Shown here one piece after another: positions 25,066 through 57,762 of a stretch of DNA of 64,000 nucleotides; position 1 is the stretch's first letter, and every line of letters begins with the position of its first letter. A program made the translations under genes and the position numbers. The stretch spans positions 51,378,297 through 51,442,296 of the forward strand of contig NC_068986.1 of NCBI RefSeq assembly GCF_001194135.2, read 5' to 3'. The notes below the pieces were generated by a model. It did no database searches. It had not been told where the DNA came from and saw nothing but the letters and a program-made list of their open reading frames with translations. Origin of the DNA: Octopus bimaculoides. Lineage: Eukaryota.

Positions 25066-25689
25066 AAGTTGAGACTTTACTGCTGCTACTCCAAGTTTCC
25101 CCATTTCTTTTCTTCACATATCTTTGTAATTTCTATGAAAGTTAGTTTTAAAATAATTTTTTTTCCCTTTTACATGTGTTTCTATATTCTTGAATAAAAC
25201 CCTTTAAAAAAAAAAAAGGATTAACGAATGAAAGATTTTTGTTAATAAATAAAACATAAAGGGGGTGTTAATAGATTAGTAAGTTACAAAAATTGTTTTT
25301 TTTTAAATTAAAAACCCGTGAGAAAGTATAAAGCTTACAAAAGAATACACACACACACGCGCACACGGAAAACAGAATCATGGAAGTGTGAAAAATGAAA
25401 GGTGAATGAAAGCAACAACGAAATTTCAAAGAAAATCTAGAGAATTAGAAAAAACGAAAAAAATAATTGTTTCAAATTTTGGTACATGGCTAGCAATTTT
25501 AGGGGATGTGGGCAGTGCCATCAAAGGCATGAGCTCACTAAGATGTTGCCCAGGTGTCTTGCAGATTTAGGGGCTTAATTCTGATCAATGTGTGTTGTGG
25601 GTTGATACCAATAAATTACTATAGGGTCTATTGCATTGATTTTCCCAGGGGCCAATAATACTGCTAAGACAACCCTGGAGCTGGGGTTT

Positions 25690-26335
25690 AGTCAAAACTC
25701 TAGTACTGGACTGGTACTTTAATTCATTACCCCAAAAGGTTCAAAGTCAAAGTTGACTTTGGCAGTATTTGAGCTCAGACTGGAAAGAGCTTGAAATAAT
25801 GCTGTGAAGTATTCTGTTTAATGCTCTAACAATTCTGCCCGCTTGCTGCCTTAACAGTAATAAGAACAGAAGTAATAACAATAATTCTTTAATATTTTGG
25901 CACAGGGTTAGTAATTTTAGGGAATGGGGCAAATTGATTACATCAACCTTAGTGCTCAACTGGTATTTATTTTATCAACCTCGAAGGGATGAAAGGCAGA
26001 GATGACTTCAGCAGCATTTGAACTTGGAACATAAAGAGCCAGTGAAAATGCCACTAAGCAGACAATGCCACAATAATAATTCTGCCAGCTGACTGCCTTA
26101 ATAATAAAATTCTTTTCTAACATAGGCACAAGGCCTGAAATTTTGTGGAGGGGGCTAGTTGATTACATCTACCCCAGTAATCAACTGGTACTTACTTCAT
26201 CAACCTTGAAGAGACCCTGAAAGGTTGAAAGGCAAAGTTGACCTCGGTGGAATTTGAACTCAGAACGTAAAGCTAGAAGAAATGCTTCTAAACATTTTGT
26301 CTGATGCATTAACAATTCTGCCAGTTTACTGCCTT
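25690..26335 (-). mobile_element. array of 3 decayed family-B SINEs
   Basis: The reverse-complement core gaaaggcaaagttgacctcggtggaatttgaactcagaacgt recurs at about 25690, 25895 and 26115. Confidence 0.75.
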
Positions 26336-27125
26336 AATAGTAATAACAATAATAAAGTGAATGGTCAAAAAAGATATTAACAAAGAATGCAATAAAATAA
26401 AAACAACAACTGAATAAATTCAATAAAATTTGAATACCAAAAGGAAAATTAATTTGAGATCATTTGAGGTTTTTTAATTATACAAATTAAATAGAGTAGA
26501 TAAATAAGGTATAAATGTCTTTAAGAAACACTGAAATGGAAAATTCAAGACTGATATAAACTAAATTTTTGATCATATTCTATGTCATTTAATTTTTTCT
26601 TTGTTCTTTACACTAAGTTAAGAAGTTTCTCAATCTCACCCAACTAATATTTTGGTATGGGATTTCAGGAATGGAAGTATGAGTGAATGAAGTTGTTGGG
26701 AGCTCATTAATTATATCTTTGTTCCTTCTGGATTAACCTGGAGTAGAGCATTCAGCTTTTTCATCAGCAGCAAATGTTGAGAAACCACAATTGGTCATCA
26801 TTAAGTAGGATAGAAGACGGTTATAGAAAAGTGTGTGTACTTTAACAGCTGGCATTTTGACAGAGTAATCTCCACCATGCCAAATCACAGCCTACTGGAA
26901 AATTCCAGGGTATACACTTTCAGTGTTTGGGGCCGATAATATTTATATATATATGTGCATGTATTATTCATAGAGGAAACCATATCAGAAAAACATAGTC
27001 AAGCTATGTTGAACTCAAAAAAAAAAAAATCTGTCTCAATGTTTTATTCATAACCATTTGGCTAAGATTATATATATTTTGCTGAAGTTGTAGATACAGC
27101 TAAAACATATTCATATATATATATA

Positions 27126-27161
<36 letters not shown>

Positions 27162-27409
27162 AGTTACTAACTACTCAAAGGTAGAGCTGTTTATGTGGTC
27201 AGGATTTGGCAGTATGCACAGTGAGCACGGCACAGGCAACAGGGGCCTCAATCAAAGCTGTTCTGTTCACTACTCTGTTCCAGACATTGTAAAAGATTAC
27301 AGATTACATAAGGAATTTTTAAAACTGCACTCATGTACTCCAAAACAAAACGAATTATGTTTGTATAAAATCTCAAATGCAGTTATATATTTACCTGAAG
27401 TAATATAAT

Positions 27410-28407
27410 NNNNNNNNNNNNNNNNNNNNNNNNNNNNNNNNNNNNNNNNNNNNNNNNNNNNNNNNNNNNNNNNNNNNNNNNNNNNNNNNNNNNNNNNNNN
27501 NNNNNNNNNNNNNNNNNNNNNNNNNNNNNNNNNNNNNNNNNNNNNNNNNNNNNNNNNNNNNNNNNNNNNNNNNNNNNNNNNNNNNNNNNNNNNNNNNNNN
27601 NNNNNNNNNNNNNNNNNNNNNNNNNNNNNNNNNNNNNNNNNNNNNNNNNNNNNNNNNNNNNNNNNNNNNNNNNNNNNNNNNNNNNNNNNNNNNNNNNNNN
27701 NNNNNNNNNNNNNNNNNNNNNNNNNNNNNNNNNNNNNNNNNNNNNNNNNNNNNNNNNNNNNNNNNNNNNNNNNNNNNNNNNNNNNNNNNNNNNNNNNNNN
27801 NNNNNNNNNNNNNNNNNNNNNNNNNNNNNNNNNNNNNNNNNNNNNNNNNNNNNNNNNNNNNNNNNNNNNNNNNNNNNNNNNNNNNNNNNNNNNNNNNNNN
27901 NNNNNNNNNNNNNNNNNNNNNNNNNNNNNNNNNNNNNNNNNNNNNNNNNNNNNNNNNNNNNNNNNNNNNNNNNNNNNNNNNNNNNNNNNNNNNNNNNNNN
28001 NNNNNNNNNNNNNNNNNNNNNNNNNNNNNNNNNNNNNNNNNNNNNNNNNNNNNNNNNNNNNNNNNNNNNNNNNNNNNNNNNNNNNNNNNNNNNNNNNNNN
28101 NNNNNNNNNNNNNNNNNNNNNNNNNNNNNNNNNNNNNNNNNNNNNNNNNNNNNNNNNNNNNNNNNNNNNNNNNNNNNNNNNNNNNNNNNNNNNNNNNNNN
28201 NNNNNNNNNNNNNNNNNNNNNNNNNNNNNNNNNNNNNNNNNNNNNNNNNNNNNNNNNNNNNNNNNNNNNNNNNNNNNNNNNNNNNNNNNNNNNNNNNNNN
28301 NNNNNNNNNNNNNNNNNNNNNNNNNNNNNNNNNNNNNNNNNNNNNNNNNNNNNNNNNNNNNNNNNNNNNNNNNNNNNNNNNNNNNNNNNNNNNNNNNNNN
28401 NNNNNNT
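27410..28407. other. largest assembly gap (N run)
   Basis: Other gaps: 1980-2354, 3180-3378, 15867-16072, 20087-20256, 21836-21845, 23140-23425, 30412-30421, 33841-33940, 36173-36618, 44356-44713 and 58155-58164. Most abut microsatellites. Confidence 1.
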
Positions 28408-29933
28408 ATATATATCCATACACATGCTAACAAAGTTAATAACCATGAAGACAAAAACTTAATCCAATAAAGAACAAAGCAATGTTTTGTTTGTTTTTTT
28501 ACTTTTTCCATTTTTAATATTTTAACACAAAGATTATATAAATTTGGGGGTCAAATGGAAGCAGAGAGGAATGAGTAGTACAGGTGTTATTATTATTATT
28601 ATTGTTACAATTATTCAATACAATATCACAAAAACAGAAATATCACTCAAGTAATAATAGTAGTAGTTGTAGTAGTAGTAGTAGTAGTAGTTAGTTGTAG
28701 TAGTAATATCATAGTTGAAACCATGCATTTAGACAAACACATGCATGCACTTATACATCATACAGTGATGGATGAAAAGACATCATCTGCTTCTGGGTTT
28801 TCGTCTCCTGTGTGCGTTCTTAGCTGTTTCAGGCAGTACTGACAGTCCATCAGCTTCCCATAGACACACAAACACATACACATATACATTCTCTCTTATA
28901 CACACACACATCTGCGCTGATGATAACACTCTCTTTGAATGATTATTTTTTTTACAGTTCTTTACTTTTGGCTTGGTTTTATTTATCATTTTTTCTTTGT
29001 GTTGTTTTCTTTCTTTGTTTCTTCACATTTATTAATATTATTATTATTGTTTTTTTTTTAAATACAGATATACATATATAGATTGATGAAAGTCTTTCGT
29101 AGATAGAATCCTCTGTAGTTTATTATGTTTTCATTTTAAAAATGTATTAAAGATCTTTTTGAAAAAAATAAAAAGTGGAAAAAACAATATGAGGATCTTT
29201 TCTTAATTATGTAAGACTAAATAATAATTAGCTGAAATACAATATATATATATATATATCCTAGCTCAATTGTGGAAAAAGATATAGATATTAAAATTAT
29301 GAAAAGGAAAAGTTTTTGAACATGATGTCAAATATTGATTTCTATTTTAAGGCTCATGGCCATTTCTTTATTTCTCATTGTAAAGGAAGGTTTAAAATTA
29401 AACAAACTGAATCAATTCCCAATATATTACTGGGACTTATATAAACAGCCTGCCTAAACATACACACTCCTTGTGGAGATGATAAATAAAAATTGGCACA
29501 AGCAGGATGTGAACTCAGAGCATAAAGGTATGAAACTAAATATTGTAATGAATTTTCTTTTAAGTCAGGCACTCTACTGTCTCAGCTACCTCCACTGCAT
29601 TAATATAAACCCAGCATAACAGTTCACTAAATTTAGAATAGTGGGGAGAGAGAAAGAGAGAGAAATTTTAAATTTTCACCAATTTAAAAACTAATTGTTT
29701 TATGACTTCTAAAATTTGCGTTTGACTAAATTAATTCTATTACTTACTGCAATACATTTTACCAATATTTTCTCCACCCATCCAATCATGATATAAGTAC
29801 TCAATAGTTTCACCTAGACACCACAGAGAAAGAAAATTAAACCCTATAATTACCAGGATGACTATGCCGACATGACAGTTTCAGTTTGGGTTAATTCAAT
29901 AGAATCTAGTCAAAACTAAATTTGTTATATAGC

Positions 29934-29973
<40 letters not shown>

Positions 29974-30320
29974 ACCTATTAAACTCATAAAGCATAATTT
30001 CAGATATTTAATATTAACTACTCTTGACTAGACACCAACAAAATCTCAGGTTTAAAAAAGGACAGGAAATTGGATACTGTTAACATTCATAATTTCTTCA
30101 AAGGTAATAGCAACATAAACCAAGTGAAATGGCTTCAGCTAGAAATCATAGGACATCACAGACCTGTTTCACAGAGAGTTCACCTCCAATTGCAACAATA
30201 CCAAATGCTGACAGCAATAAAAATCAAAACAAAACATGTCCCAGGGAAATCTGAATTAAAAGACCCTTTTATCTTTATGAAGATTCTCAAAAGCAAAGTC
30301 TTTAACTTTGCACAATAACT

Positions 30321-30411
<91 letters not shown>

Positions 30412-30421
30412 NNNNNNNNNN

Positions 30422-30478
<57 letters not shown>

Positions 30479-30957
30479 TAGATAGATAGATAACACTTTT
30501 ACTCACCAACATTTGTGACCGTTTATCTAACAACAACAGTGTTTTTACAATATGCAAAAGGCAGCGGAACCTCCTCTAGAATGCAGCCAAACCTTTAAAA
30601 TGACTAGGTTTAAAAAGGATCAAAATTGAAATCTTCAAACACTACCATATCCATACATGGAAAGAGGTCATTATAACCAACCAATATATGCAAATTTGAG
30701 ATGCAGAACCTCAGAGTTAGTTCTAAATATTTAAACATGAAAGAACAATAATAGCATTCTTCAGTCACATTTAACTAGGGCTACTTAGTAACGATCACAA
30801 CAACAACAACAACAACAACAGTAATAATACAGCTGTCATCAAATCACAAATTATTTCACAGTTAAAATTCAAGACTTATATTTCACTATGTTGAGCCAAG
30901 TGCACATGTGTGAGTAGGTATGTGCATGTGTGTGTGTATATATATATGTGTTTGAAA

Positions 30958-30988
<31 letters not shown>

Positions 30989-31497
30989 TCAGAGAAAAAT
31001 CAATGAAAAATGTATGCATGTGTATTTCAGCATTTGAGATGATATTTTTCTGTAGGTTTGATAGAGTGCTAGATACTTCTGTGAGAGATAGAGCAGGACT
31101 CAGCATTTAATATTAGTATGTAAATCGGTAAATGTAAAATTAATTCACATGCACACTATATATCATATGAGTGTATGTGTGTGTGCATGCAAAGGTTTGA
31201 TATATATGTGTGTGTGTGTGTGGGGGGGGTCATTTATATATAAATCTCATTGCATGTTGGTGCATGTGATTGTCAAAGCCTAATATCTAATTAAAATTAA
31301 TAAGACCATCTCATACAATAATGCCTCAGGGCTTTCCCCATAAGGAAACAATGCTCAAGCTTTGATCCAGATATCCTTTAACATAATCTAGATGTTTGAA
31401 TATCATTTTTCCTTCTAAAATTATATCACATTAATAGATGCTCCAGTGAATTAAGTATATCATGAATTCAATCAACAATCTCTTTACAGAAACTTGA

Positions 31498-31535
<38 letters not shown>

Positions 31536-31961
31536 GTAAACACCCATTAACACAATAAAACAAAATGTTTTGTAGTTAAAGAGTGAATATAAAAAAAGAA
31601 TATCACAGACAACTGTGAGATAAACCCTTATCCATTGAATATTTTTATTCAGATTTTTTTCCCCATGACAAAAAATTTCAAAAGAAAATGTAAACATTTA
31701 AAAATAAAACAAATACCATTGTCAATTTTATAACATGCCGATTGGCAGTAACAAAGATACCAATAATTATATCTACAGACTGAAAGATCCTTTAACAAAT
31801 ATAACCGAGAGAAAACTCAAGGCAGCAGTAACAAATTCTCAAAGTAACAAGAGTAAACTCGGAAAATAACAAAACATCAACTGAGCTGATGCAAAAGAAT
31901 AGCATTAACCACCATCATAATCATTCCGGAAATAAGACATGTCTGTAAAAATACCAAAGTA

Positions 31962-31996
<35 letters not shown>

Positions 31997-34640
31997 TGCA
32001 TGTATAATATAAACATATATATATATATATACACACACACACAGACATACATACATAGATACATGCCTGGTAAAAATAGAACTGAAGTTTTCATCTTTTT
32101 TCAAAACATTCCCATTTTCTACAGGATTCTAGTTTCATGATTACAAAAACCCTTTGAAACTTGAGATTTCAAAAATATCCAGAAATGAATTCGAACTGAG
32201 ATTAATTTACTGATACTGTGACCCCCATGAAATTTAGATTAACACTAGTTCCATAATTCAAAAAGGAATGCCACTTAAATATGCTTAAGATGTACAGTTA
32301 GTTTCCATTGTCCAAACATTAAATCTTTATGTTAATATACTTTCCAAGTTGTTTCTGGCAACTGAAGACAATGGCAACTAAACTTTTTTCTCCTCCTCCT
32401 CCTCCTCCTCACTTAGAGTGAACGATTCTTCTTTAGTCTTCTATCTATTGACTAAAGGTAATATTTGGACTACCTTTTAGTGGTTTACATATAGCAAACT
32501 AAGGGAGTTTATAATTTATATATTTTTGAAATTTTTTTCTTCTTAAATAGGCAAATATATTGTGATATCCAGTGCAGAGTTATTGACTGTAGATCAAAGT
32601 GTTTTGAAATTACAAAATTAAAGATGCATACTACAAACATATAACCATTTTTACATGCATAATTTAATTTTTTTTTAACTACAAAAAAGGTTTCCCATTC
32701 TTTATAACATTGGAAATAACCAAATGGACTATAATATATATATATGTATATACATGTGTGTATGTGTATGTAAGTGTGTGTGTGTGTGTGTGTGCCAAAA
32801 TTATTGTTAAAATGTAACAGAGTAAGTAACAAAGTTAAATACAGTTGAATCAATGCTCCTTTGGTGCATTGTAAAAGCACTCGTGAATGTTGTGTGTCCA
32901 ATACGAACAATTAGAAAAAAATTGCTTTTGAAAATAATTTATTTAATTTTATGGGAGACACATAACTACTGAATGTATGTGAGTTGACAGCTTACATCAC
33001 GTTAACACATTATTTTGTTCCAAAAACAAAATATTTCAATTTTTTTAAAAAAGAAAGGAACAAAAAAAAAAACTTTTTCTTTTACTACTTCAGTTTAATT
33101 TTTTTGGTAAAGCTTAAAAAGCTTAGAATAACTTTGAAATAGTTATCACTTTAAATCCATCAACATTTGTTTAATATTTAACTATGTCCTTGAACTTATA
33201 AAATAATTTTTTCTATTTAGAGTAAAAAGAAATGTCTATTTGATTTTTGACTAATAGAAAGAAAGAAATCATAATTAATTAAAATGTTATAAGACTTATT
33301 GTTAAACAAATCACTTAGATATCCTAATCACATTTCTTAAAAAAGAAATCACAAAATATTTCAATATAAGTGATAAAAGGTACAGAAATAAATCTTTTTG
33401 TAGAGTGAATAAATAAAAATATTTTGAATCTACCTTCACTCACCAGGTTAGCAAATGATGCTCTAATTAACAACAATGTTTAATGACTAATCACAATTAG
33501 TTTTATACACATTTTGTGTACATGTGCACAAATGTAGAAACGTGCATGTGTGAGTATAAATGAAGGCATATGCATCATATACACATAGTGTATGCATGCA
33601 CTGTACATATACACACAGTATGTATGTTATTGTATATGCTTCCTTACATATCTATAAAAGTTCTCAGTATATAATTGTATGGTATCATGAATTTGAAATT
33701 ATACCTAGCTTATAAGCACAATTCATCTGATAAAGAGAGGTCACTTCTGTGGGTCTGAAAGCTATCTATGTACAAATATTCCGTGTGTGCGTGTGTGTGT
33801 GTGTGCGTGTGCGTGTGCGTGTGCGTGTGTGTGTGTGTGTNNNNNNNNNNNNNNNNNNNNNNNNNNNNNNNNNNNNNNNNNNNNNNNNNNNNNNNNNNNN
33901 NNNNNNNNNNNNNNNNNNNNNNNNNNNNNNNNNNNNNNNNTATATATGAATGCACACACATATATACACAAATATGTATATTTGTGTATACATTTGCATG
34001 TATACATACACATACAAATGTATTTCTTTTCTTCTATTCGCACCTCAAATAATTAATCAAATCTTTTCAAAAGAAATATTTGTACATGCTTAAGAAAATT
34101 CTAGCTTACAATTCATACAATAATACACATTTTCTAATGGGTGATCATTTAATGACAAGAGAAAGATATTTACTGTACATACCTACCTGCATACAGATTA
34201 GATACAATGTATTGGATACAAAATATTTTAAGAAGCTGGAATTACACATCCTTGTAACAAAGGAGATGGTAATGGAATAGTTTCACAATCATATTTATTT
34301 ATGTTGCAGTTGACAAATATCTTATCCAGGAACATAGTATGCTTTCATCCTCTTAATGCTACAGTAGCAGAATCAAGTTCAGATGAATGGACTTAATCTA
34401 AGCATGCGCATGTAGACTGAAGAACAACAGTTAAGCAGGGTAATCTTGGATCTGTGGAGTTTTCTCCTCTATCATGAGGCCTACATTGTAGTTGTATTTG
34501 CTTATTTTGTATATTAGGTATTACTTTTATTTCATTTCACCCTTTCCCTTTTCTGCCCCCATTTAATTTATCTAAACCATCACACAAGTTATAAACAGGC
34601 CTTATCCCTCATCTGGTAAATAAAAGAAATTATTATTATT

Positions 34641-35008
34641 GCCTCCACTTTAGCGAAGGCAGAGGTGTTGTTTTCAGTTGTATTTGTTTGTTTGTCCTTG
34701 GACAAGATATCTCGAGAACTGCAGGATGGATTTGGATGAAACTTTCAGGGATGTTTGTCCTAATGACTGGCATGAACTGATTAGATTTTGGGAGGGATTG
34801 ATCCAGTACCAGACAAGGATTCTGGATTATTTTTCCTGCTTTTTTACATAATTTTTGAGAGCGGTTGAGGTTCCGTTTTAATATTCTTGTTTGTGAGAGC
34901 AGTAGAGTTTATTTCAAATATTCTCATTTAAAAAATCATCTCTGGCTAATTGTTGAGAGGATGTTGGTGTTGCCTTGGCAGAGGTTTGTGCTCTCTGAGC
35001 GCTCTTGT
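34641..35008 (+). mobile_element. Helentron-associated (HINE/DINE-like) non-autonomous element
   Basis: 5' gcctccactttagcgaaggcagagg, then a (GTTT)n patch, ggatggatttggatgaaac, and 3' gccttggcagaggtttgtgctctctgagcgctcttg. This is the typical subterminal-IR architecture. Confidence 0.6.
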
Positions 35009-35017
35009 TATTATTAC

Positions 35018-35055
<38 letters not shown>

Positions 35056-35059
35056 GTAT

Positions 35060-35502
35060 TAAGGTGGCAAGCTGGCAGAATTGTTAACACACCAGGCAAA
35101 ATGTCTAGCGGCATTTCTTCTGTCACTACATTCTGAGTTAAAATTCTGTAGAGGTCAACTGAGCCTTTCATCCTTTCAGGATCAGAAATTAAGTACCAGT
35201 TGAACTCTGGGGTTGATGTAATCAACTAGTTCCCTCTCTGCCAAATTTCAGGCCTTGTGCTTAAATTAGAAAAGACTATTATTACTATTATTATTAAGGC
35301 AGCAAACTAGCAGAATTTTCGACATGCTGGACAAAATACTTAACCACTTTTTATCTGTCTTCATGTTCTGAGTTCAAATTCTGCCATGGTCAACTTTGTA
35401 TTTCATTTTTTTCAAGGGTTGATGAAATAAATTCCAGTTGAACACTGGGGTCTATGTAACTCACCCACAAAATTTCAAGCCTTGTGCCTATAGTAGGAAG
35501 GA
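35060..35502 (+). mobile_element. 2 family-B SINEs in (ATT)n
   Basis: Copies at about 35060-35278 and 35297-35502, with heavy CpG decay. Confidence 0.8.
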
Positions 35503-36127
35503 TTATTATTATTATTATTATTTTCATTATTATGCCTCTCCTGCTTCAGTAGCAATAATTGGATGAGATTGTAGAATGTTCCCAGATATTTTAGAGCCTA
35601 CTGTCCAGAGAATTAATCTATGTAGAAATAGAGAGCAATGTGATGCTGTAGTACATGAAACATAGTTTCATGCAACAGTTGTGCTAGAGACATGGATGTA
35701 TACAGTTATTTTGAAAAGTACTTTAACCCATTCAATCAACAAGGTCACCTAAAGTTTTAATATACTTTTGCATAACATTGCTTTCTGGATATTAACATTA
35801 ATGAGTAAATATGATTGGTGTACTAATCCATACACTGATTTTTTTATATATTAACATTGAGCAATTATAACTGATGAACCAATCCACACTTTATGAGTTT
35901 GAGTAAATAATTAGAATCAAGAAAGATTGTTGTTGTTGTTTTTATCTTTAGTAGAAACACTAACACCAAGTATAAATAATGAGCTGAAATTGTTGAATTA
36001 GATCAATTTAAAGTAAAATTACTGACTATTTGATTGATAGTGTTGATATTTATTGGTCAAAGAAGATGGTTTAATAGTCCTTAAGTTTCATATTAAATGT
36101 TAATATATGTGTGTGTATGTGTATGTG

Positions 36128-36172
<45 letters not shown>

Positions 36173-36779
36173 NNNNNNNNNNNNNNNNNNNNNNNNNNNN
36201 NNNNNNNNNNNNNNNNNNNNNNNNNNNNNNNNNNNNNNNNNNNNNNNNNNNNNNNNNNNNNNNNNNNNNNNNNNNNNNNNNNNNNNNNNNNNNNNNNNNN
36301 NNNNNNNNNNNNNNNNNNNNNNNNNNNNNNNNNNNNNNNNNNNNNNNNNNNNNNNNNNNNNNNNNNNNNNNNNNNNNNNNNNNNNNNNNNNNNNNNNNNN
36401 NNNNNNNNNNNNNNNNNNNNNNNNNNNNNNNNNNNNNNNNNNNNNNNNNNNNNNNNNNNNNNNNNNNNNNNNNNNNNNNNNNNNNNNNNNNNNNNNNNNN
36501 NNNNNNNNNNNNNNNNNNNNNNNNNNNNNNNNNNNNNNNNNNNNNNNNNNNNNNNNNNNNNNNNNNNNNNNNNNNNNNNNNNNNNNNNNNNNNNNNNNNN
36601 NNNNNNNNNNNNNNNNNNGATAGATATTATTAAAAAAGAAAGATCTACATGCTAACTAAAGGAATAGTTTGATTTCATTTCTTTTGCATAAAATGTTTTA
36701 AACTGGCTGACTTGATAAAACTAGAGAGATAAATAAACTTACAGGTCACAAAAATAGTCTCTGAATGTCAAAGATTTAT

Positions 36780-36910
36780 TTCATGTATGGTCATACAACA
36801 ACTTGCAGAAGATGTTGGATGCCAAGTTGAAGACCTAAAAACACTAATGGAAGATTGGGAAGGATGGAGAGAGGTAGTCAGGCTGGCCTGGGTAATCAGC
36901 CTAACTGAAT
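36780..36910 (+). mobile_element. RTE-type LINE C-terminal remnant
   Basis: IQQLAEDVGCQVEDLKTLMEDWEGWREVV resembles RTE C-termini (YIDQLxxDTGCxxEEL...MxDRxxWR). Confidence 0.55.
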
Positions 36911-39511
36911 GATGTCTTGATAAGAAAAAAAAAAAATAAATAAATAAACAACCATCAGGTTGAGAGAAAAGTAATGCAACTATTTTGCACTTAAATAATA
37001 AATGCAGGTCTTTAAATTTAGACATTCATATGAATTTTCAGAGAATTGCAACTGATCAAAATATTAAAACATCACCAGGCAGAGCAGTCTTAGCAGTGTT
37101 AAAGACACTTCAGGGATATCAATGTGCCTGGCACATACTGACAGTAAGCCACAAAATTCATAGATTAAAATTGGGCCCCTAGACCTGTGAAGCCTCTGGG
37201 CAACTGCCCTGTGAGCTCATGCCTTAAGACGGTAATGCTACCAGACCAACAGCTGAAGTTTCAACAGTTTTGCTCATATCATCAACACTGTACCATGTTC
37301 TTGGTAAAGAAACTTAAATCTGGGTGGTCCAAGTCTAGTTATAACTGATGAGAAAAATGAAAAATGGCTTCTACTCCTTTGATTGATAATACGTAATAAT
37401 ATGGTGGCATGTTGCTAAGGAAATAACCATTACTTTACCACTTAATGCACTGAAATGAGATAAACATTGGTCTGTTATAATCCCTTTTTTTTAATTAATA
37501 GCAACACCCGAGAAGAAACGATGGGGATAAATGTTTTCTTAGTTACATAGTTACTCTCTCTTTCAATTTAATTTCCTTTATGTATGTGCAGAAAAAAAGA
37601 GCAATATGTGTGAGAGAAAGATTTAAAAGAAAAAGAGACAAATAAAAAGAGAGGAGAAGACTACATGAAAGAGAGAGAGAGAGAAAGGAAGACAAAGAAA
37701 ATAAGACGGATAAAGAGAGAGAGGAAGATTGAAAGAAAAAGAGACATATAAAGAGAGAGAGGAAAGTAAGCTAGAGACAAAGAGAAAATATATATTTCCA
37801 TATAAAGAAAAGCAAAGCACCATTACCACTATGCCAACATAGGAGCCTTAAACAGCCGTTCTATTTGATAGAAATAGTAGCCAAATACTGTTTGTTCATG
37901 CATTAGCCCTTTTATATAAAAGATACATTAGAAAATGCAATCTTAGATAACTCTAAAAAGACAGGATGGTCAAGGCTGCAGTACCTTTGACCATAGTTCT
38001 ATTCAATAAATGTTGACCTGAATAATAACAATATTAAAAACCTTTTCATAATTTATTAACACCAGTGATTCTATAGATATATTTTCATTCCTTGGCTGAA
38101 GAAAAGAATTTTTCTTTGAACATGTGTTGAGTGAGAAAATAATAAAACAATTAATTAAGTATAGAGATTGATCTGAAATATAAATCGTAGCACTCCTATA
38201 TTGTAACAAATTAAATCTGATTTAAAATAAGCACTGAACCAAAAATATAAATCTTTAATAGCAGAGTTAAATAAACCATCTCCAGCTTTGACAACATAAA
38301 TATTGTAGTTGTTGTATTTGTATTAATGTTCACATTGATGAAATCATAAATAAATAAATATAAGTGTTGCCTATTCAACACACCTATATGCTGGAATTAT
38401 TTAAAGTTGGGTGTTATTTTGGGGTTAAAGAACAAAATAATCAAGTAATTATTGATGATCCCTTAATTTTAGTAGAGAATCTTGAAGTACTAGTCTAATT
38501 CACACAAATATACACTCATATACATCCTATGTATATATTCATTCACACCAATGAACATTTCCACTTGCTGTAAAAATACTGAAAACTTCACAATAACCTT
38601 TCACGTTTCTTCGTTATGTTATTATTTTCAAAAATATATTATTTTTGGTGCAAATTATTTCTCAAAAGAAAAGATGTATAATTAAAAGGGATCCAGCTAA
38701 ATAGATATTAAGTGATTTATTTTTTAATTTTAATTTGAAAAATGTGATAAAAATAAAGTTAAATTAATATATTTTTAGCATAAGTATTTGTTCATTATAG
38801 ATTATTTCACATTGGAATTTTTTTAAAATTTAAAGTGATATATTAGTAATTGTGTCTACTTTAAACTACGAGTAGTTATTAGGAAACCTTTTTCCTTTTT
38901 GTCTTCAGCATTTGATTTTTCAGCTGCAAAGAAGGAAGCAAATTTGAATTATTATTGGCAGTTTCGGTGGTTAGCATGTACTTTATTCATCTGAAATTGA
39001 AGAAAACTAAGTTGGAAGTATAGTAATGATTTATATTTGCTTTTAAAAAGGAAGAAAATGTAAACAGTCCCTCTCGTTAACGTCTTCGTATTTTACGGTA
39101 AAGAAAAAAATTACTTAAGGGAAATAACTCCATTGCGCAAGGGAGGGAAGCAGGCATTACATATTTAACACGTTTTCAAATCTCTGGATGACAATTTTTT
39201 TTTTTATTTAGAAATTATCAGCCAATTTTATACTTCAAAATAAGTTAGTGTTGACGGCTATATTCGCCACTCAATTTTTGTTTATTTATTAACTTATCAA
39301 AATTAATCTATTAATAGAGTCTTATTGTGTTTACATAAACGCATCAAGTATTAGAAAAATAACAATCTTAAGCTAAGGTTATTTTAATGAATGGTAAAAC
39401 TATGTGAAAAGGCTTCACTTAGAGTGGGATAAACCAAGAAATATAACATAGAATTGTATTGATTTACAATTCCTTGTTTCATATTCACATAATCGTTGTG
39501 CCAACGAAACC

Positions 39512-39542
39512 AACTGAGCTGAGTCAACAAGGAAACTTTATA
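39512..39542 (-). promoter_or_regulatory. candidate core promoter: TATA box plus TCAGTT initiator
   Basis: TATAAA at 39542-39537 and TCAGTT with its A at 39515 (TATA at -27), inside a local CpG-retaining region (about 38600-40830). Confidence 0.35.
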
Positions 39543-42500
39543 GGGTTGCTCAAAGCGCATACAGCAGAAGGTGAAACTACTAAAAATCACATCCTCGTCT
39601 TTTGAGAAATGAAAAGAAAGAACATATGGGATAATGTACATCTGTTTACATTATATCTTCAAAAAATAAGGAATGATCATAACTAGAACGTCTCTGATTC
39701 TGAGTGTCCGTTTGATTAACTCAGGCTTTATGTTTATTTTACCTTTTCCACTTTAAATTAGCTATAATTTATTTCAAAATTTGATAGCTTTTCGCCTCTA
39801 AGTATTTAAATAATATTAATCATTTATAGTAAGCTGTAATAAGCACTATCTATGAAGATGTTTTGAAATTATTAGCAAAAAAAAAAAAAAAAAATTCAAT
39901 CAGATTTGAAGCAAATGATGTCAAATTTCACTTGAAATAAATCAGTAAATGATTGCTAGTCTCTCATCATACATTATAATAATGATAGTTTCAGAAGAAA
40001 TACCTCCACTTATGCTATGCTACATAAGCCTTTGGAAAAACGATGTATAATCACATGTTCTTATTGTCTTAAACCAAAAATATTTGACTTACGTGCCTCA
40101 TAAAAAAACAAAGAGTGGTATTATCACTACCATAGAAAAAGACCAATTTCATAGTCAGATACGATAAATTAAGCAATGGTTTATATATGCTTTTGTAATC
40201 TCAAGATGACATTTTAAGTATTAAAATAACGAAAATAATCTCTTTCATTATTGTGGAGCTAAAAATTATCAGACGAAAACTATACAGACAAGACCTAAGT
40301 TGAATATCAGTAAGAAAATAAAATTCTATATTTGAACAATAGTTTATAATGAAGTTGCGAATATTTCTTGGGTAAAAATCATGTTGGAAATTTAGAAACC
40401 AAGAAAAAAAAACAAAACAAATTTCAATGACATTGTATAATATTTAAGGATCAGGTTGATAGTTATATTTCATACTAGCTAATGACTAAAAACTTTTAAA
40501 TTGGCATTAGTAAATAAATAACTTACTTTTATGTCAAAAGAATTAAAAAATATAAGACATTTTTTGTGAAAGGATTTTAATTTGTAGAACAAAAGAAAAA
40601 TATTAGTTCATATTTTTCCAATGAAAAAAACAAAAAAAACCCTGATATTTCATTAGCTGCAAATATATTTTAATAATCCACTAATATAATTATAATTAAT
40701 AATTTTATTAGGTATTATATGAGTAGTAAACTCAAACGCAGAAGAAAAAATATATAATAAATTATATCTCAAACTCCAGCAAACTGAAACTATAAAAATA
40801 ACCACCTAGTCTCTAATTAAAATCGATAGTTTTTATTCAGAAACTTTTTAGTAAAAAAAAAAAAAAAATCAAAACTTCATTAGGTTACTTAGTCAATCCT
40901 TTAGAATCCAGAAATAGTCTTCATGTTAAATATTATCCATGTTAATAGGATAGGCATTAAAATGTGTTAGTAAAAACAAGCATTCCCAGAACAGATTTTA
41001 CCACATTGAAGAGTTACTTTGAGCAATTTAGTTTGATACCTCTATCAGTTATGAAATGATAGGAAAAAAAGTTAGGTAGACTCCTTGTTTTAAGTCCTAT
41101 AGTCAGGATGTTATCACAATGTGATATTTGTGAAGAGAGCAAAGAAAACAGAGAAAGTGAGGAATTATGAATTAAGTGCTGAAGAAGAGTTATGAAAGAT
41201 AACAGGAAGTATGATGGGTTTTTGTTGTTTTTGATTAAAAAGAAAAATTAAAAAAAGCAGTAGCAGAAAATATTTGAAAGAGACAAAATAAAATGTTTCC
41301 TATACTCCAGAGAAATATATTCCTAGGTTGTGAAATTTAAGATTGGAAGGTTGGCAGATAAGAATGTATACTTTTAGCCCTAGTTAGTACTTTACTATTA
41401 TCCCTTTGGGATATAATATCAATGTAAATATCTTCATACTTTCTTCCAGGAATCTCAGTAACATTATGAAATCTTAATTTTCATACCCTACGCAACGTGA
41501 AACTAATTTTGTAAACATTAGAGAAATAAGAAAAACATTAATTTATGATAATTTTGAGTTGTTCAGTGTTGGAAAAAAACTAAGTCATATGAATTAAGCA
41601 AAATATCTCTGACCGAGGAATGTTTATGCTACAACTTAGTAAAAACATGAAGGCTTCAGATTCATATTTGAATATTGATAGGGAAAAAAAGTTGGCATCA
41701 CTATGGCATCTATTTCAGTTTTGTGTTCAGGATTTGATGAATGAAGAAGTTTAATTTTACCACTTTCACCTGTCTCTGCTGCTATAATGTAAGTTCACCA
41801 GGTCTGTGTGGATTGTACATAGCAGGATGTCCAAATCTTTAACAAAGACACTAACATCAAATTTACATATTTCTCTTGTTTCGAGAGAGAACATTGAAGA
41901 GCCGAGATCTCTTGAAATCCAGAATGTTGCAGAACCTTGTCATTATAGAAGGGAAAAATCAGAACTTTTGGAATTATGAAATGGTGCCTTGATCCAGGAT
42001 TCATATAAGACTTTATAGATATACATGACTGCAAATTTTCCTTTTTTTATGTTCCAACTTCAAAGTTTACAAGGCCTCTCAACTGTTCACTTGGTGCACA
42101 AAATCATTCTTATTTGAATAAGTCCTCTGGACTGTCAGTAGTGAGCTTTGTAATAGGAGTAACCACTGCTGAGGGAAATGACAGAGAACAAATGTCTTCC
42201 AGGGAATAAGCATGTGCTCTTATTCTGGATATTTTGCCATTCATCTGCATGTGGAATAGTGCATCATTGGTCATTACATTTTCCAGACACTACAGAATTT
42301 CTGACTGATACTATAATTTCTTCTGAGACTCAGTACCCAGGATGTATTGTGTTAGAGGATTGATAGCAAACTAATCTCCATTGAATTTTATGTTTATTCA
42401 GCCACTGAACTTTATGTTTCCTTCAGTACATCTTAGGCTTTTGATATCTTTGGAAGAATTTTACTGCTCATGATGGTTTAATTTTCATTGGCAAAGATTA

Positions 42501-42654
42501 TGAGAATTGCTGCACTGACAACCATGATTAAATCATATCACATGATTGCAAACAATAAAATATCCAAGATGGCCCTCTATGGTACTGCTGCTCAGTATAT
42601 GTAAACCATCAAAGAAAGTAATGTTATCTGCAACAACATACTTCTATTTTTTAG

Positions 42655-43012
42655 GGAGTCATACAGCACATGGCTCAGTAGTTAGAGCGCTGGGTTCACA
42701 ATCATGAGGTAATGAGTTCAATTCCTGGACTGGCTGTGCATTGTGTTCTTGAGCAAAGCACTTTATTTCACATTGCTCCAGTTCACTCATCCGTAGAAAT
42801 GAGTTGTGACGTCACTGGTCCCAAGCTGTATTGGCCTTTGCCTTTCCCTTGGATAACATCAGTGGCATGGAGAAGGGAGGCTGGTATGCATGGGCAACTG
42901 CTGGTCTTCCATAAACAACCTTGCCCAGTCTTGTGACTTGGAAGGGAACTTTCTAGGTGCAATCCCATGATCATCCATGACAGAAGATCTTTACCCTTTA
43001 CCCATACAGCCA
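42655..43012 (+). mobile_element. tRNA-derived SINE with a V-domain-like segment
   Basis: Head ggctcagtagttagagcg...gttcaattcctgg, then gagcaaagcactttatttcacattgctccagttcactca. Confidence 0.65.
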
Positions 43013-43525
43013 CTCTCTCATTTTCTCTAAAGTTTGTAACAATGTCCTATGCCCAAATTTGTCAAAAATCTTTGCAATGTCTCCTTATGAATGATTGAGT
43101 AACTGCTTTAGCAGCCAGTGGCTATATGAAGCAGCATAAACATGGACAACCCCCCCACCCCCCAAAAAAAACAATGAGACTAGGTATCACTTAGCAAGCT
43201 TTAGATAGACAAAGATTTTCTCCTCGATAAACATTTTCCAAGGCATTGATGATATATAATGTAGATAGTGTTCCTCTAATTCTTTGCAAACACATTTTTG
43301 CTTCTAATATGTAAACGGAATATTTTGGCCTTTCAGTAGATTTTCTTGATGGCTGCCACTTTTAATACAGCTTTCAATAGTTAACCTAAGCATCTTGGTA
43401 AGAATTTGTTTTACATATGAGAATATATAACATAAAACACATACACACAAATATATAAACAAATACTCATACACATATATATATATATAAATGCATGTAT
43501 ACATATGCAAACATGGGTACATACA

Positions 43526-43565
<40 letters not shown>

Positions 43566-43689
43566 TGCACACCTACATATAAATATATATAATGCATGCA
43601 GAGATACATATCTATGAGTGTGCATAATATGAATATACACTACATATATAAACATACACTCAAATTCACATATGTGTGAGTGTGAAGTT

Positions 43690-44165
43690 CACTTGCCAAC
43701 CACATGGTTTCAGGTTCAATCTCACTGCATGCCAATTCAGTAAAATATTTTCTACTGTAGCCTTGCGAATAGATTTGGTACACAGAAATTAAAAGAAGCT
43801 ACCTGTGTGTGTGTCTCTGTGCACACACACACACACACACATGCATATGCATCAGTGTGAGTTCATATTTTCCCTCATTTTCACATGCGTCCAACCCATG
43901 CAAGCTGGTTGCACACAATGACCTTACTGCTCATGTACACGGTGCTATTTGCTTGCAGTTCACCACAAAAACATGTCTGGGCTCCTTGATACATCTTGAC
44001 ATGTTGCACAATCTTTGCAAACAAAATATTCCTTCATGCACTGTCTCCATCTGTTTCCACTTCTCTGTATAACTATGTTCAAATTGTTTGTTGTTCAATG
44101 GACTGAGTGACTATTGTCTTGCTTCAAAAGCAGGTGGGTATTGGCGACTGGAAGTGCAGCCACAT
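43690..44165 (+). mobile_element. decayed OK-like composite SINE
   Basis: Head, then (TG/CA)n, then a body ending ggtattggcgactggaag. Confidence 0.55.
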
Positions 44166-44314
44166 TTAGAAAAATCTCTTAACTTCAATGCATTGCTATG
44201 TGGCCAATGCAAGTATGAGGAAGCAGGTATTTAGACAATGATTAGGGCAATGATGTGTAAATATCCATTGAACAATATAAAATTGATATACATACATATA
44301 TGTATGTATATATA

Positions 44315-44355
<41 letters not shown>

Positions 44356-46014
44356 NNNNNNNNNNNNNNNNNNNNNNNNNNNNNNNNNNNNNNNNNNNNN
44401 NNNNNNNNNNNNNNNNNNNNNNNNNNNNNNNNNNNNNNNNNNNNNNNNNNNNNNNNNNNNNNNNNNNNNNNNNNNNNNNNNNNNNNNNNNNNNNNNNNNN
44501 NNNNNNNNNNNNNNNNNNNNNNNNNNNNNNNNNNNNNNNNNNNNNNNNNNNNNNNNNNNNNNNNNNNNNNNNNNNNNNNNNNNNNNNNNNNNNNNNNNNN
44601 NNNNNNNNNNNNNNNNNNNNNNNNNNNNNNNNNNNNNNNNNNNNNNNNNNNNNNNNNNNNNNNNNNNNNNNNNNNNNNNNNNNNNNNNNNNNNNNNNNNN
44701 NNNNNNNNNNNNNTGAATGCAATCAGACATCACTGCAACAAAAAGTCTACATCTGCGAGCTAGCTAGCAAACTATATAAGCATCTAAAAAGTCTAAAGCT
44801 ATTACAGCAAGCAAGACTAATAGAATATCATTAATTTACTTTAATAAAATCAAAACTCAATATGCTAAAATGGGAGAAAAGGAACAAAATTTGAACAGAA
44901 ATTTTGAATTTATATTTCATTTTCTGTTAATTGAACTATTCTTCCAATCAACAAGATGCTATTATACTACTGGATTCTGTTTGGAGAGCTAATTAAGTGT
45001 AAAAGTAGTTCCAAGGAATTCTGGTGTTGTGTGACAAACTTTCTTGAAAGACACCAGACTGAAAATATCAATTTTATTACCATGTTAAAATATTGCACTT
45101 TAAGCTTGGCAAGATTTCTGTTGCTGTCATATCTATTCTTGAATTTGAAATTATTGTTATCTCACTTCATCAAAATCAAATTATGTTAAAGGCTGTATAA
45201 GTCAAAGACCCTGTTTGTTAGGCATGACACAGATATATTGAAGTACATTTACATACAGTAACACACACTCAATTGCATTTTGTTTATGTTGTACTCCTAG
45301 CTTAATTTTATTGGATAAGATATCATCAGTATGTGCATACTAAATGATGTGTCATAAGCTAAGATACATCAGATTTAATTCTATTATTCTTCTGACATCA
45401 CATATAATACTATTGAGTTTATGTGTATTAAAATGTGAGTGCTTTAACCTGGTGGTGTGAAGAAACACTCAATGCACTCTGAAAAGTGGTTGGTGCTTGA
45501 AAGAGCATCTAGTCATAGAAATGATGCCAAAGTTGACACAGAATCTTGACACAGCTCTAAGGCTTGCCAGATACTGCCGAAATGTCCAACACATGCCAGC
45601 ATAGAAAATGGATGTTAAATATTGATGATGATGTATTTGTATGCAATACCTTCAGTGTCTATGAATAAAAGTCTCATTATCATCAATCATGGTATGTTAC
45701 AATCTGATTTCAGTATTTATTTGCAGTATACAAAGATGTATTTTTAGGCTATTAGTTTCTCTGCCTGATGTGTCCATTTGTGAATCTTAGTCTTGTTAGA
45801 TGTTTATGTCTCAAAGAGAGATCCATAAGAACCAGTTCATTACAGCCCAGATAGGATAAAAAACAAAAAACCCCAAAAAGGAAGTTTTTTTTTCATGGAC
45901 TGAACTGTCTCAAAGTTCTAGATTCACCTGCTTGTGAGAAATTAACTTTACTGTTCAATGATGATTACTCATGATCCCAGTGGTTGGAAACAGCAAACTG
46001 CTAACTAGAATATA

Positions 46015-46410
46015 TGGGTGCAAGTGTAGCCGTGTGGTTAATAAGCTTACTTCCTGACCAGTTGGCTCTAGGTTTAGTCCCACTGTGTTGCACCTTGTGC
46101 AGATGTCTTCTATAATCCCTGGCCTACCAAAGCATTGTAAGATGGAAACTAACCAAAAGGAGCCCATTATAGATATATACATATATGTGTGTGTGTATGA
46201 TCGTTGCAAACAAGTGTTACTCACATACAAACTGTGTCCTTTGCTTCCAAGCATCTGTGAAAACATGTTCAGCCATGGGGAAATATTAGCTAACTTGGAA
46301 ATAGATGGGGGTTGGTGATAGGAAAGGCATCCAGCCATTGAAAAATCTGCCTTCACAAATGTTGTCCAACCCATGCAGGCATAGAAAAGTGGCCATTCAA
46401 ATAATAAAGA
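46015..46410 (+). mobile_element. OK-like composite SINE ending in an RTE-type tail
   Basis: tRNA head, microsatellite, then ttggtgataggaaaggcatccagcc...tccaacccatgcaggcatagaaaagtgg. Confidence 0.7.
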
Positions 46411-48212
46411 ATATAGTTCTTGGCACTAAGTATGAACTGACAGAAAGATATCAGATCATATCGAATATTTTCTCTCATTCTGCAGTATCAGCATGCATCT
46501 GAAGTTTGGTGTGTTATGTGTATTATGTAAAGTACACAAGTTTTTATTTATTTATTTACTGTCTTATATCCATTTTCCAAAGTAGTATGTGGTGATGGCT
46601 TGTTTTTAGTTATTAATATTATTGTTGGTGAAGCAAATGTTTTTACACCTGGATGTTCTTATTCCTATACATGCAATTCCTCCTACACACTTAAGTAGGA
46701 GTGGAACAAGCACTTTTGTCTGCCAAGCAAACTGGAGCAAACAGAGTTATGTGCATCATTCAGGGATACAACATAACTGGATGCAGTAATATACCATTTT
46801 AATCTTACAGTGTTATACACACAACCAATATATATTGTTACATATGGGTTTGTTTTTTTAATCTATTCAGGAGAGGTGGGAATATAATCAGTTTAAATAT
46901 AATACCACTTTCATAACTCCTAGAGAGATAGAGAAGATAAAAGCAACTCTACTCCTTTGGCAGTCATTCAGAAATTGAGGATGACTTGGAAGCATATACA
47001 GAGTGTTCAAAAATCATCTTTACTACTTCCACAATTTATAGTATCTATCAAAGTTGAGATCCAGCAATTGACTTCTTTGCAAACAATGAAGCCCATGTGG
47101 AAGTGTTCTGCTGTTTATAACAAAGCTATTTCTTTGTCCATGTTCTCCAATAAATTCTGCTAATTTAGCCTTATTTTTTGCATTTTTCTAAATTTTTCAA
47201 ATTGTAAAAGGTAATTTATAGACTATTCTTGTTAATTATTTTTTTTTAGATTCCTACATAGTTGAGAGTAGACACTGAAACCCTCTTGGTTCCTCCACTC
47301 TCGACTCAACAGAGCATACAGGATATCTCAGATGGATGGAAAGAGGGCTGCATGAGCATCAAGCACTTGGCTAGTGTTCATTTTTGGCTGAGTTGATTGA
47401 AGCAACATGAAATGAATTATCTTGCTCAATTATCTTGCCTAACCTAGGAATTGAACCCATAACCTTATGATCATGAACTAAGTCTTTGAACTACTAGACA
47501 AATCAAGTGGAAACTAAATATACTATACAAACTGATCCTTCTCTTTTCCTTCTTTGCCAGTTTTAGCATTAAGCACCAATATAAAACAGGGTATGGGATA
47601 TTTCTAGTACATGAATCAGCTGTCCCTTTATACATATATATTTTTACTTAATATATTCTCATGGCTGGCTGCCGACAAATTTTTCTGCTCTTAAGAAAAA
47701 AGGATTTTATCCTTTATATCTATACTGTTCAGTATTTATGCGTTGAATAAAATTTATCTTTCTACTTGTTTTATATATAATAATTAGTGAAGCAAAAGTT
47801 CAAGTGCTATTGTTTTGTTTTTTTTTGATATTTTATGCAAAAGGGCTTTCAAGAGAAAAAAAAAATGAGGAGGAAATAAAACAGAAGACTAAAGTTTAAA
47901 GATTTGGAAAAGAGAAAAATAGTAAAGAGAAAGGAGGTAGAATAATGCTATTTAGCAGACAAGCAGTAAAGAGTAAGTTTGACTAGCAAGCAGATGAGAA
48001 AGATTGAGTAAAGAGTGAGTGAGCTAGTGAGTACTAAAAAGGAGCCTTTCAAATTAGATTAAAAAAAGAAGTGTTTGAAAGAAAGGAACGAAAGGATAAA
48101 AAAAAAAAGAAAGTGATGTAAGAAGGTAAGTGAAGAAATAACCATTGCTAATAGAAAATGAGAAAAGATATTTGGTGGTAGCATTTTTTTTTTTCTTTGT
48201 TTGTTTTCTTAC

Positions 48213-48215
48213 CTT
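48213..48215 (-). CDS. SLC8A: candidate 3-nt microexon (AAG) of the NCX gene
   Basis: Minus strand reads ttttctgtttttgtttttcag|AAG|gtaaga. It preserves frame after the phase-1 end of the 100-nt exon (G|AA = Glu). No transcript support available. Confidence 0.5.
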
Positions 48216-48404
48216 CTGAAAAACAAAAACAGAAAACTCAAGTTTTTTTCTGCTTTCAGTTTAAAATGTCTTCCAAAGACTCCAGCAAGAAGCAATGCAT
48301 ACAATAAAAAAAAAAATGGGAAAGAGAGAGAGAGAAAGAAAGAGAGAAAGAGGTTTGCATTATTAACATATACAAAAAGTAACATCATCAATATTAAACC
48401 ATAG

Positions 48405-54981: not shown

Positions 54982-55081
54982 CTGCGTTGACTGTTATGGC
55001 CTCAATGAACTGTTCTCTCCAGGAAGAAGTGCTAACTACAAGAGATAAGTTAGCTTTCTTTAATAACTTGTCAACCACACT
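54982..55081 (-). CDS. SLC8A: Na+/Ca2+ exchanger internal exon, 100 nt, phase 0 to 1
   Basis: Acceptor ttatattttcag|AGT and donor GCAG|gtcagt. Translates SVVDKLLKKANLSLVVSTSSWREQFIEAITVNA(G), versus NCX1 STVDKLIKKTNLALVVGTNSWREQFIEAITVSAG (recalled), with the same exon boundaries. Confidence 0.96.
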
Positions 55082-57640: not shown

Positions 57641-57762
57641 CTTGAATTCTGTGCTCTCAGTTATGTGAACTGTAATCTTGATATTTTCACCACGTCTCGG
57701 TTTACCAAGTTCCACCAACACAGGATCATCTTCCTCCTGCTGTACATTTTCAGAACTACTAC
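57641..57762 (-). CDS. SLC8A: Na+/Ca2+ exchanger internal exon (end of CBD2), 122 nt, phase 1 to 0
   Basis: Acceptor tctcctttag|GT and donor AAG|gtcagt. Translates (G)SSSENVQQEEDDPVLVELGKPRRGENIKITVHITESTEFK, matching NCX1 EEEERRIAEMGRPILGEHTKLEVIIEESYEFK (recalled). Joins in frame to 54982-55081. Confidence 0.93.

Follow-up and report, generated by a model that had tools for sequence, protein, structure and literature searches.

In a 64,000-nt stretch of the Octopus bimaculoides genome (contig NC_068986.1, positions 51,378,297 to 51,442,296; the whole stretch is called the window here), three nucleotides, AAG at 48215..48213 read on the minus strand, very probably constitute a genuine, alternatively included cassette exon of the cephalopod Na+/Ca2+ exchanger (NCX, SLC8A-type) gene. 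Inclusion of this 3-nt microexon turns TVNA-G into TVNA-E-G, as the initial annotation of the window had proposed, and the claim is now supported by transcripts, by the flanking exons and by conservation. The observations that carry the assignment are the genomic anatomy of the site, the content of cephalopod NCX mRNAs, the exclusion of the flanking exons as sources of the AAG, and the presence of the same site in the orthologous intron of a cuttlefish.

A 3-nt exon in a long intron of the octopus NCX gene

The window is AT-rich (G+C ~32%), with 3,167 N within gaps and many microsatellites and transposon remnants. Only two NCX-coding pieces, both on the minus strand, were located in the window by tblastn, for which the queries were a mammalian NCX1 probe and four invertebrate NCX proteins of full length from metatranscriptome contigs. 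The first, at 57641..57762, encodes (G)SSSENVQQEEDDPVLVELGKPRRGENIKITVHITESTEFK and precedes a 100-nt exon at 54982..55081, referred to below as the TVNA exon, which encodes SVVDKLLKKANLSLVVSTSSWREQFIEAITVNA plus the first base (G) of the next codon (phase 1). The TVNA exon ends with ACA GTC AAC GCA G at 54982, where it is followed by the donor CAG/gtcagt (slashes mark exon boundaries), and is homologous to NCX1 residues that include segment 709–728, the binding site of the exchanger inhibitory peptide (XIP). At the protein level, identity of the two exons to the NCX of O. sinensis (over 73 residues) and to that of O. vulgaris was 100%. A search with this 73-residue peptide matched only read-through open reading frame (ORF) fragments of other animals, which showed a conserved intron position after TVSAG. 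Homology to NCX/SLC8A across the Calx-beta and Na_Ca_ex domains identified the host gene; its orthologues carry PF01699, PF03160 and PF16494, and their closest solved structures are those of human NCX1 (8jp0 and 8sgi). With the same probes, no further NCX exon, acidic stretch or transmembrane segment 6 (TM6) was found in 1..48206 of the minus strand. Because no NCX coding sequence lies downstream of 54982, the intron that follows the TVNA exon is at least 55 kb long and reaches the window edge. The next exon (GDDDDDSEEEKLPSCMDY...) lies downstream of this intron on a separate 11.6-kb O. bimaculoides contig (L035, 2555–2666). The NCX gene of Argonauta spans 293 kb.

The motif gtttttcag/AAG/gtaaga, to which the initial annotation had drawn attention, was confirmed on the NCX strand at 48213..48215 (minus strand), and the distance of 6.8 kb given there from the exon ending in AAC GCA G was measured as 6,767 nt. 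Its minus-strand context reads ...gagttttctgtttttgtttttcag/AAG/gtaagaaaac, or, over a longer interval, ...cttgagttttctgtttttgtttttcag/AAG/gtaagaaaacaaac. The 3′ splice site (48216..48238, minus strand) contains the AG-free polypyrimidine tract ttttctgtttttgtttttcag, with the nearest upstream AG at −23/−22, and a likely branch-point region (cttgAg) adjoins the −23 AG. The 5′ splice site gtaaga (48207..48212, minus strand) is, together with the exon (AAG/gtaaga), near consensus. In the reading frame GCA G/AA G/GA GAT (A-E-G-D), the phase-1 G and AA form the GAA codon for Glu, and the last G of the microexon opens the Gly codon.

Splice-site strength was compared with an approximate position weight matrix, whose scores (12.4 bits for the microexon acceptor and 10.1 bits for its donor) serve as a ranking device only. 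By this ranking the acceptor was among the top 8 of 3,166 AG sites and the donor among the top 16 of 3,269 GT sites on the gene strand. The two real NCX exons of the window scored 14.6 and 9.3 for the acceptors and 8.7 and 9.9 for the donors, a range that the microexon sites match or exceed. Canonical acceptor and donor sites around an exon of no more than 27 nt, on the gene strand and within an intron, were found both in octopus and in the cuttlefish Sepia pharaonis.

The microexon and its intronic flank are conserved in Sepia

In the 74.7-kb S. pharaonis locus (L036), the TVNA exon occupies 44591–44690 and the next exon begins at 59754, leaving a 15-kb intron in which AG/AAG/GT occurs once, at 48329–48331 (tttcttttttgttttttcag/AAG/gtaaggaaa). 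This site, cag/AAG/gtaagg, scored 13.7 as acceptor and 11.6 as donor with the same approximate matrix. Its 3′ splice site carries ctaAG at the distance of the octopus −23 AG, followed by atttcttttttgttttttcag. A generic pattern of six pyrimidines, AG, three nucleotides and GTRAG had a single match in each locus, and both matches were the 16-mer TTTTTCAGAAGGTAAG on the NCX strand.

The similarity extends into the intron on the acceptor side. Positions 48200..48390 of the minus strand align with L036 48180–48345 (blastn E = 2.5e-24, 72% identity over 192 nt), and this island was the only non-microsatellite similarity detected when the whole Sepia intron was compared with the whole 64-kb window. 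Within it, a 27-nt block, TTGCTTCTTGCTGGAGTCTTTGGAAGA (48269..48295, minus strand), is identical in octopus and Sepia and lies at almost the same distance from the microexon (−80 to −54 in octopus, −79 to −53 in Sepia). A candidate splicing enhancer or silencer, the block is present in a single copy both in the window and in L036, and its sequence includes a CUUCUU stretch as well as two UGC motifs. Thus, in the two genomes compared, both the exon and its flanking intron were conserved.

NCX transcripts with and without the additional Glu

When 1.84 billion representative proteins were scanned for the exon peptide without a profile, an SLC8A model of Sepia (Acanthosepion) pharaonis (P0015) was recovered, which reads TVNAGDDDQ and contains no additional Glu. 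A word-indexed search seeded with this model then yielded an ORF from Logan RNA-seq assemblies (P0155) with the sequence TVNAEGDDDQ. The cuttlefish contig that encodes it (L034, SRR8281690) reads ...ATTACTGTAAATGCAG-AAG-GGGACGATGATCAAG, with the junction GTAAATGCAG-AAG-GGGACGATGAT, and a contig from a second decapodiform (L039) reads GTAAATGCAG-AAG-GTGACGATGAG. Both mRNAs therefore have the form GCAG-AAG-G(G/T)GACGATGA, with the AAG exactly between the flanking exons. Full-length cephalopod NCX proteins, found with a long chimeric probe, provided further examples. The squid exchanger NCX-SQ1 of Doryteuthis opalescens (O02196, P0282, 892 aa), cloned from stellate-ganglion cDNA, contains EAITVNAEGDDDDEEG and hence TVNAEGDDD, the reading that the initial annotation had correctly given for squid, and the O. 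sinensis RefSeq isoforms X3–X6 (P0274–P0277) also read TVNAEGDDD. Among ~110 NCX proteins inspected, the additional Glu was specific to cephalopods. The ~100 non-cephalopod proteins lacked it and have SAG[D/E] at this point, as do the four invertebrate NCX mRNAs recovered from metatranscriptomes.

Transcripts that skip the microexon were assembled as well. Two contigs (L037 from SRR9970001 and L038 from ERR12945499) read GCAG-GGGACGATGAT and match the inclusion contig L034 without a difference in the 34 nt that precede the junction. In this cuttlefish cluster the proteins with Glu were found on 42, 41, 1 and 1 contigs (85 contigs) and the protein without Glu on 2. In the second decapodiform, P0279 and P0405 contain the Glu and P0403 and P0404 do not (2 versus 2 contigs), and its presence was independent of that of a neighboring 21-nt exon. 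The microexon is therefore alternative, since transcripts encoding TVNA-E-GDDD and TVNA-GDDD both exist. The predicted octopus junctions are GTCAACGCAG-AAG-GAGATGATGAC for inclusion and GTCAACGCAG-GAGATGATGAC for skipping.

A different view of the same transcripts is that the exon is real but effectively constitutive, the skipped forms being low-level splicing noise or artefacts of assembly and annotation, so that no regulated switch would exist. The 85 to 2 ratio in cuttlefish agrees with this view, as do the very strong splice sites, in contrast to the usually weak sites of regulated microexons (PMC8797185); the Glu-less entries for Sepia, O. vulgaris and Argonauta, moreover, come from gene models. 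It is opposed by the full-length assembly of the Glu-less form in two independent runs and by its presence in two of the four contigs of the second species. Assemblers normally return the dominant isoform, so skipping seems to predominate in some samples, and the conserved 27-nt block suggests regulation. We consider constitutive use unlikely, though by no means negligible.

Several points weigh against the assignment of the AAG as an alternative exon that matters to the exchanger. The X3 models of O. vulgaris and Argonauta hians lack the Glu, and could be either true skipped isoforms or annotation misses. For Octopus, the indication that the exon is used comes from RefSeq proteins of O. sinensis, modelled with RNA evidence, and the splice-site ranking came from the approximate matrix described above. 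Finally, one more Glu in an already acidic and probably flexible stretch may have no functional effect at all.

Possible recursive splicing and possible chance occurrence of the site

The position of the site deep in a very long intron raised the question of whether it is primarily mechanical, a way station that lets the intron be removed in steps, much as in recursive splicing, with the Glu as a tolerated by-product. Recursive splice sites have a similar layout, in which a polypyrimidine tract and CAG are followed almost at once by GTAAG. The juxtaposition of strong 3′ and 5′ splice sites in an intron that covers at least 55 kb in the octopus and 15 kb of the Sepia locus, and a splice-site strength unusual for a microexon, would suit such a role. 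However, classical recursive (ratchet) sites leave 0 nt in the mRNA, whereas here 3 nt stay; the first junction, GCAG/AAGGTA, has no GT at the required position and so regenerates no 5′ splice site; and skipped transcripts exist, which shows that splicing of the long intron does not require the site. A primarily mechanical role is very unlikely, and the site is not a zero-length recursive splice site.

We also considered whether splice-like sequences had merely come together by chance in an AT-rich, low-complexity intron and are never used in this octopus. The motif lies between T-rich and A-rich runs and beside microsatellites. No RNA structure presenting the exon was evident (z = −0.18, −0.38 and −0.33 for folds of the surrounding sequence), and comparison of the region with itself returned (AT)n microsatellite matches only, placing the site outside any repeat family of the window. 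The looser pattern YYYYYYAGNNNGTRAG (Y6-AG-N3-GTRAG) matched the window once, at the microexon, versus 0.13 matches expected, and at least one match appeared in 12 of 100 shuffled windows. For the bare 7-mer AGAAGGT, ~3 occurrences would be expected in ~52 kb of this composition, and one was present on the gene strand downstream of the TVNA exon. On the other hand, no second acceptor-donor pair as strong as that of the microexon was found at spacings of 3 to 27 nt on either strand of the window, with 0.002 such pairs expected per length and strand under independence. Within a single genome the motif is thus unusual but not decisive, and remains only suggestive; the decisive evidence comes from other species. 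The orthologous cuttlefish intron contains the identical 16-mer, the identical 27-nt block and the ~190-nt alignable island. The split between octopods and decapods is very old, a few hundred million years. Moreover, the AAG needed by the transcripts has no other genomic source. Together these observations make coincidence highly improbable.

The flanking exons do not supply the AAG

Both neighboring exons were inspected as possible sources of the three nucleotides. The next exon of O. bimaculoides (L035) begins ttttag/GAGATGATG, which corresponds to ...gttgttactgttttag/GAGATGATGAC and, over a longer interval, to ...gttgttactgttttag/GAGATGATGACGACGATAGTGAAGAAGAAAAACTCCCTTCTTGTATGGATTAC, with no AAG before it. 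In S. pharaonis (L036) the next exon begins ttctcag/GGGACGATG, or tgttttctcag/GGGACGATGAT, again with no AAG. The upstream donor is GCAG/gtcagt in both animals. The insertion is therefore not explained by alternative splice sites of the neighboring exons, whose acceptors read ttttag/GAGATG in octopus and ctcag/GGGACG in Sepia.

The octopus acceptor (L035 2552–2557) is itself a TAG/GAG tandem, and NAGNAG acceptors are a far commoner source of single-codon differences than 3-nt exons. Nevertheless, the idea that a NAGNAG acceptor of the next exon or an alternative upstream donor provides the AAG, with the window motif a coincidence, is barely credible, since the distal AG would delete GAG, and with it the Gly (A-D-D-D), and add no AAG, the Sepia acceptor has a single AG, the donors of both species offer no AAG, and the intronic AAG is conserved together with its flanks. 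A tandem-acceptor source is thus refuted for O. bimaculoides and S. pharaonis. No Gly-less isoform from use of the distal AG was seen among the cephalopod NCX sequences. The Gly is, however, missing from one NCX1 isoform of a frog (TVSAEDDDD).

In Sepia, model P0153 (...ATISE/GDDD) was considered as the product of a CAGAAG tandem acceptor and rejected, as the genome shows a separate 63-nt segment (AKDEGGGSEEKASKGFATISE; L036 56644–56706) with the donor CTGAAG/gtgctt. This segment is treated as an exon in models P0153 and P0271, both of which also read through the TVNA donor; neither the read-through nor the 63-nt segment occurs in any assembled transcript. Both features are probably annotation artefacts caused by an AAG that could not be placed.

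Proposed mechanism and consequences for the exchanger

The exons encoding ...EAITVNA-G and (G)DDD...KLPSC are separated by a very long intron, of at least 55 kb in octopus and of 15 kb in Sepia, and the microexon is situated within it. Inclusion gives GCA G/AA G/GA GAT (TVNA-E-GDDD), and skipping gives GCA G/GA GAT (TVNA-GDDD). The two introns that flank it are presumably removed one after the other, because a 3-nt exon is too short to hold the 3′ and 5′ splice-site complexes together. The very strong acceptor and donor and the conserved element 54–80 nt upstream would aid such stepwise removal.

The additional Glu is placed where the conserved SWREQFIEAITV segment gives way to the acidic run. 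The palmitoylated Cys of KLPSC follows ~12 residues later, and TM6 also lies beyond this point. In NCX1, residues 709-SWREQFIEAITVSAGEDDDD-728 form the core binding site of the autoinhibitory XIP segment (PMC7296346), and the nearby Cys (KLPSC) is palmitoylated and conserved in squid (PMC4608915). As the Glu sits at the XIP-binding site near the palmitoylated Cys, an effect on Na+-dependent inactivation is a reasonable and testable hypothesis, though only a hypothesis. Judged from position in the protein, the likely outcome would be a fine tuning of Na+-dependent inactivation, of XIP binding or of the linker register. A more far-reaching proposal is that the one-Glu microexon is an ancient regulated switch, older than the octopod-decapod split, which would alter how XIP docks on the SWREQFIEAITV-acidic site or shift the register relative to TM6 and the palmitoylated Cys, give cephalopod neurons and other tissues exchangers that differ in Na+-dependent inactivation, and represent one case of a wider molluscan hotspot. 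This full scenario is speculative, and we regard it as quite unlikely in its entirety.

Relation to known microexons and to NCX splicing

The closest well-studied parallel is cytohesin-1/-2, in which a conserved 3-nt exon adds one Gly (diglycine versus triglycine PH domain) and alters lipid binding (PMC6314551). As in the cytohesins, the NCX microexon is a conserved 3-nt cassette exon that contributes exactly one residue, with both isoforms expressed; in kind it is ordinary, if extreme. The two cases differ in gene family and in protein context, the Gly lying in a folded PH domain and the Glu in the acidic linker of a transporter. In addition, a functional difference caused by the single residue has been demonstrated for cytohesin-1, whereas any effect of the NCX microexon is a prediction.

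Neural microexons of the enhancer of microexons (eMIC) program (Srrm2/3/4) offered a second comparison. The NCX microexon resembles them in being a very short in-frame exon of an ion-transport gene, with flanking intronic conservation, upstream UGC motifs, and inclusion in a neuronal cDNA, that from the stellate ganglion, which is the only sequence assigned to a tissue. The cis code of eMIC exons comprises a weak 3′ splice site, a long AG exclusion zone, UGC near the 3′ splice site and a UCUC-rich tract (PMC8797185). At the NCX site, in contrast, the acceptor is strong and the AG-free zone is only 21 nt long, the first AG upstream being at −23. Conserved UGC motifs occur far from the splice site, at −72 and −79 in octopus and at −71 and −78 in Sepia, which also has a non-conserved UGC at −43, and the tract next to the microexon is U/G-rich, without alternating UCUC runs beside the AG. 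These cis features fit the eMIC code of flies and mammals poorly.

Known splicing of NCX1 involves the mutually exclusive exons A and B and the cassette exons C–F in Ca2+-binding domain 2 (CBD2) (PMC2217150). There, in the same gene family, small exons modulate ionic regulation. That region, however, lies upstream in CBD2, and the microexon is found one exon further downstream, in the XIP-binding and acidic segment. NAGNAG tandem acceptors produce the same single-codon indel and protein isoforms that cannot be distinguished from those described here, but the 3 nt in NCX lie kilobases from both neighboring exons.

He et al. (1998) sought isoforms of the squid exchanger by reverse transcription PCR and found none among nine sequenced clones (PMC2217150). 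In the literature searched, the isoform without Glu appears undescribed. The Glu itself has been in databases since 1998 and is present in O. sinensis RefSeq; what is new is its recognition as a separate, conserved and optional 3-nt exon. The initial annotation had asked whether transcripts carry the AAG, whether the 5′ end of the next exon supplies it and whether the motif is conserved in orthologous introns: transcripts do carry it (L034 and L039), the next exon does not supply it (L035 and L036), and the motif is present in Sepia. Its expectation that gene predictors would miss the exon held for S. pharaonis, where at least one annotation mishandles it (the Glu is dropped in P0015, and P0153 and P0271 are garbled), but not for the NCBI models of O. 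sinensis, which contain the Glu.

Exons of 3 nt are among the shortest known, and standard aligners are less sensitive for microexons under ~8–10 nt (PMC7821500). The squid exchanger is a classical preparation for Na+/Ca2+ exchange, and the cloned NCX-SQ1 is the isoform with Glu. The microexon thus provides a natural and directly testable single-residue variant in the XIP-binding segment that was mapped in NCX1 and governs inactivation. The compact and deeply conserved 27-nt putative cis element, in turn, gives a handle on how a 3-nt exon is recognized in a very long intron.

Other small exons of NCX genes and minor features of the window

A further NCX microexon of cephalopods, 21 nt long, was found in Sepia (L036 ~23095–23115, ttttctag/ATACTGATTCTACTCACTCAG/gtaact); in octopus it would lie beyond the window (>64000). 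It encodes DTDS(T/A)HS, flanked by ...LVKKP(T) on one side and GSSS... on the other. Its use varies among Logan transcripts and between O. sinensis X3/X4 and X5/X6, and it combines freely with the 3-nt exon. Within each of the O. sinensis pairs X3/X4 and X5/X6 (P0274–P0277), the isoforms differ by a single Ala right after KKP, a 3-nt difference that probably reflects an alternative donor of the exon upstream of 57762, outside the window.

In other molluscs, insertions of 3–6 residues (VGQL, DSGASK, DKES, KKL, EQP) were found at the same TVSA/G junction, in Haliotis (P0297 and P0301), Mytilus (P0315), Ostrea edulis (P0319), Mya (P0306) and Biomphalaria (P0345). They suggest that small optional exons reside in this intron in several lineages of molluscs. 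Three metagenome contigs (L006 3055–5385, L008 545–2017 and L031 1000–3321; JAAUXT, JAAUYG and JAAUXW) carry 3–6 tandem copies of a TVNA-exon homologue (the SWREQFIEAITV segment) within a few kilobases, an arrangement reminiscent of mutually exclusive exons in an array. For L006, arthropod proteins matched best. In a non-cephalopod locus (L018 12917–12919), cagAAGgtagg occurs 2.8 kb downstream of the homologous exon, without a conserved flank. No other such pair was present in the downstream flanks of 28 loci, 64 kb in all, and this one may be due to chance or represent an independent 3-nt exon.

Elsewhere in the window, an ORF at 56671–57027 (minus strand), within the intron between the two NCX exons, resembled a mariner/Tc1 transposase by eye, and an ORF at 15368–16075 (plus strand) resembled, also by eye, a reverse transcriptase with a zinc-finger-like tail, broken by an N gap. 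A short repeat with ORFs such as FHPF(R/E)VDK was present in several copies.
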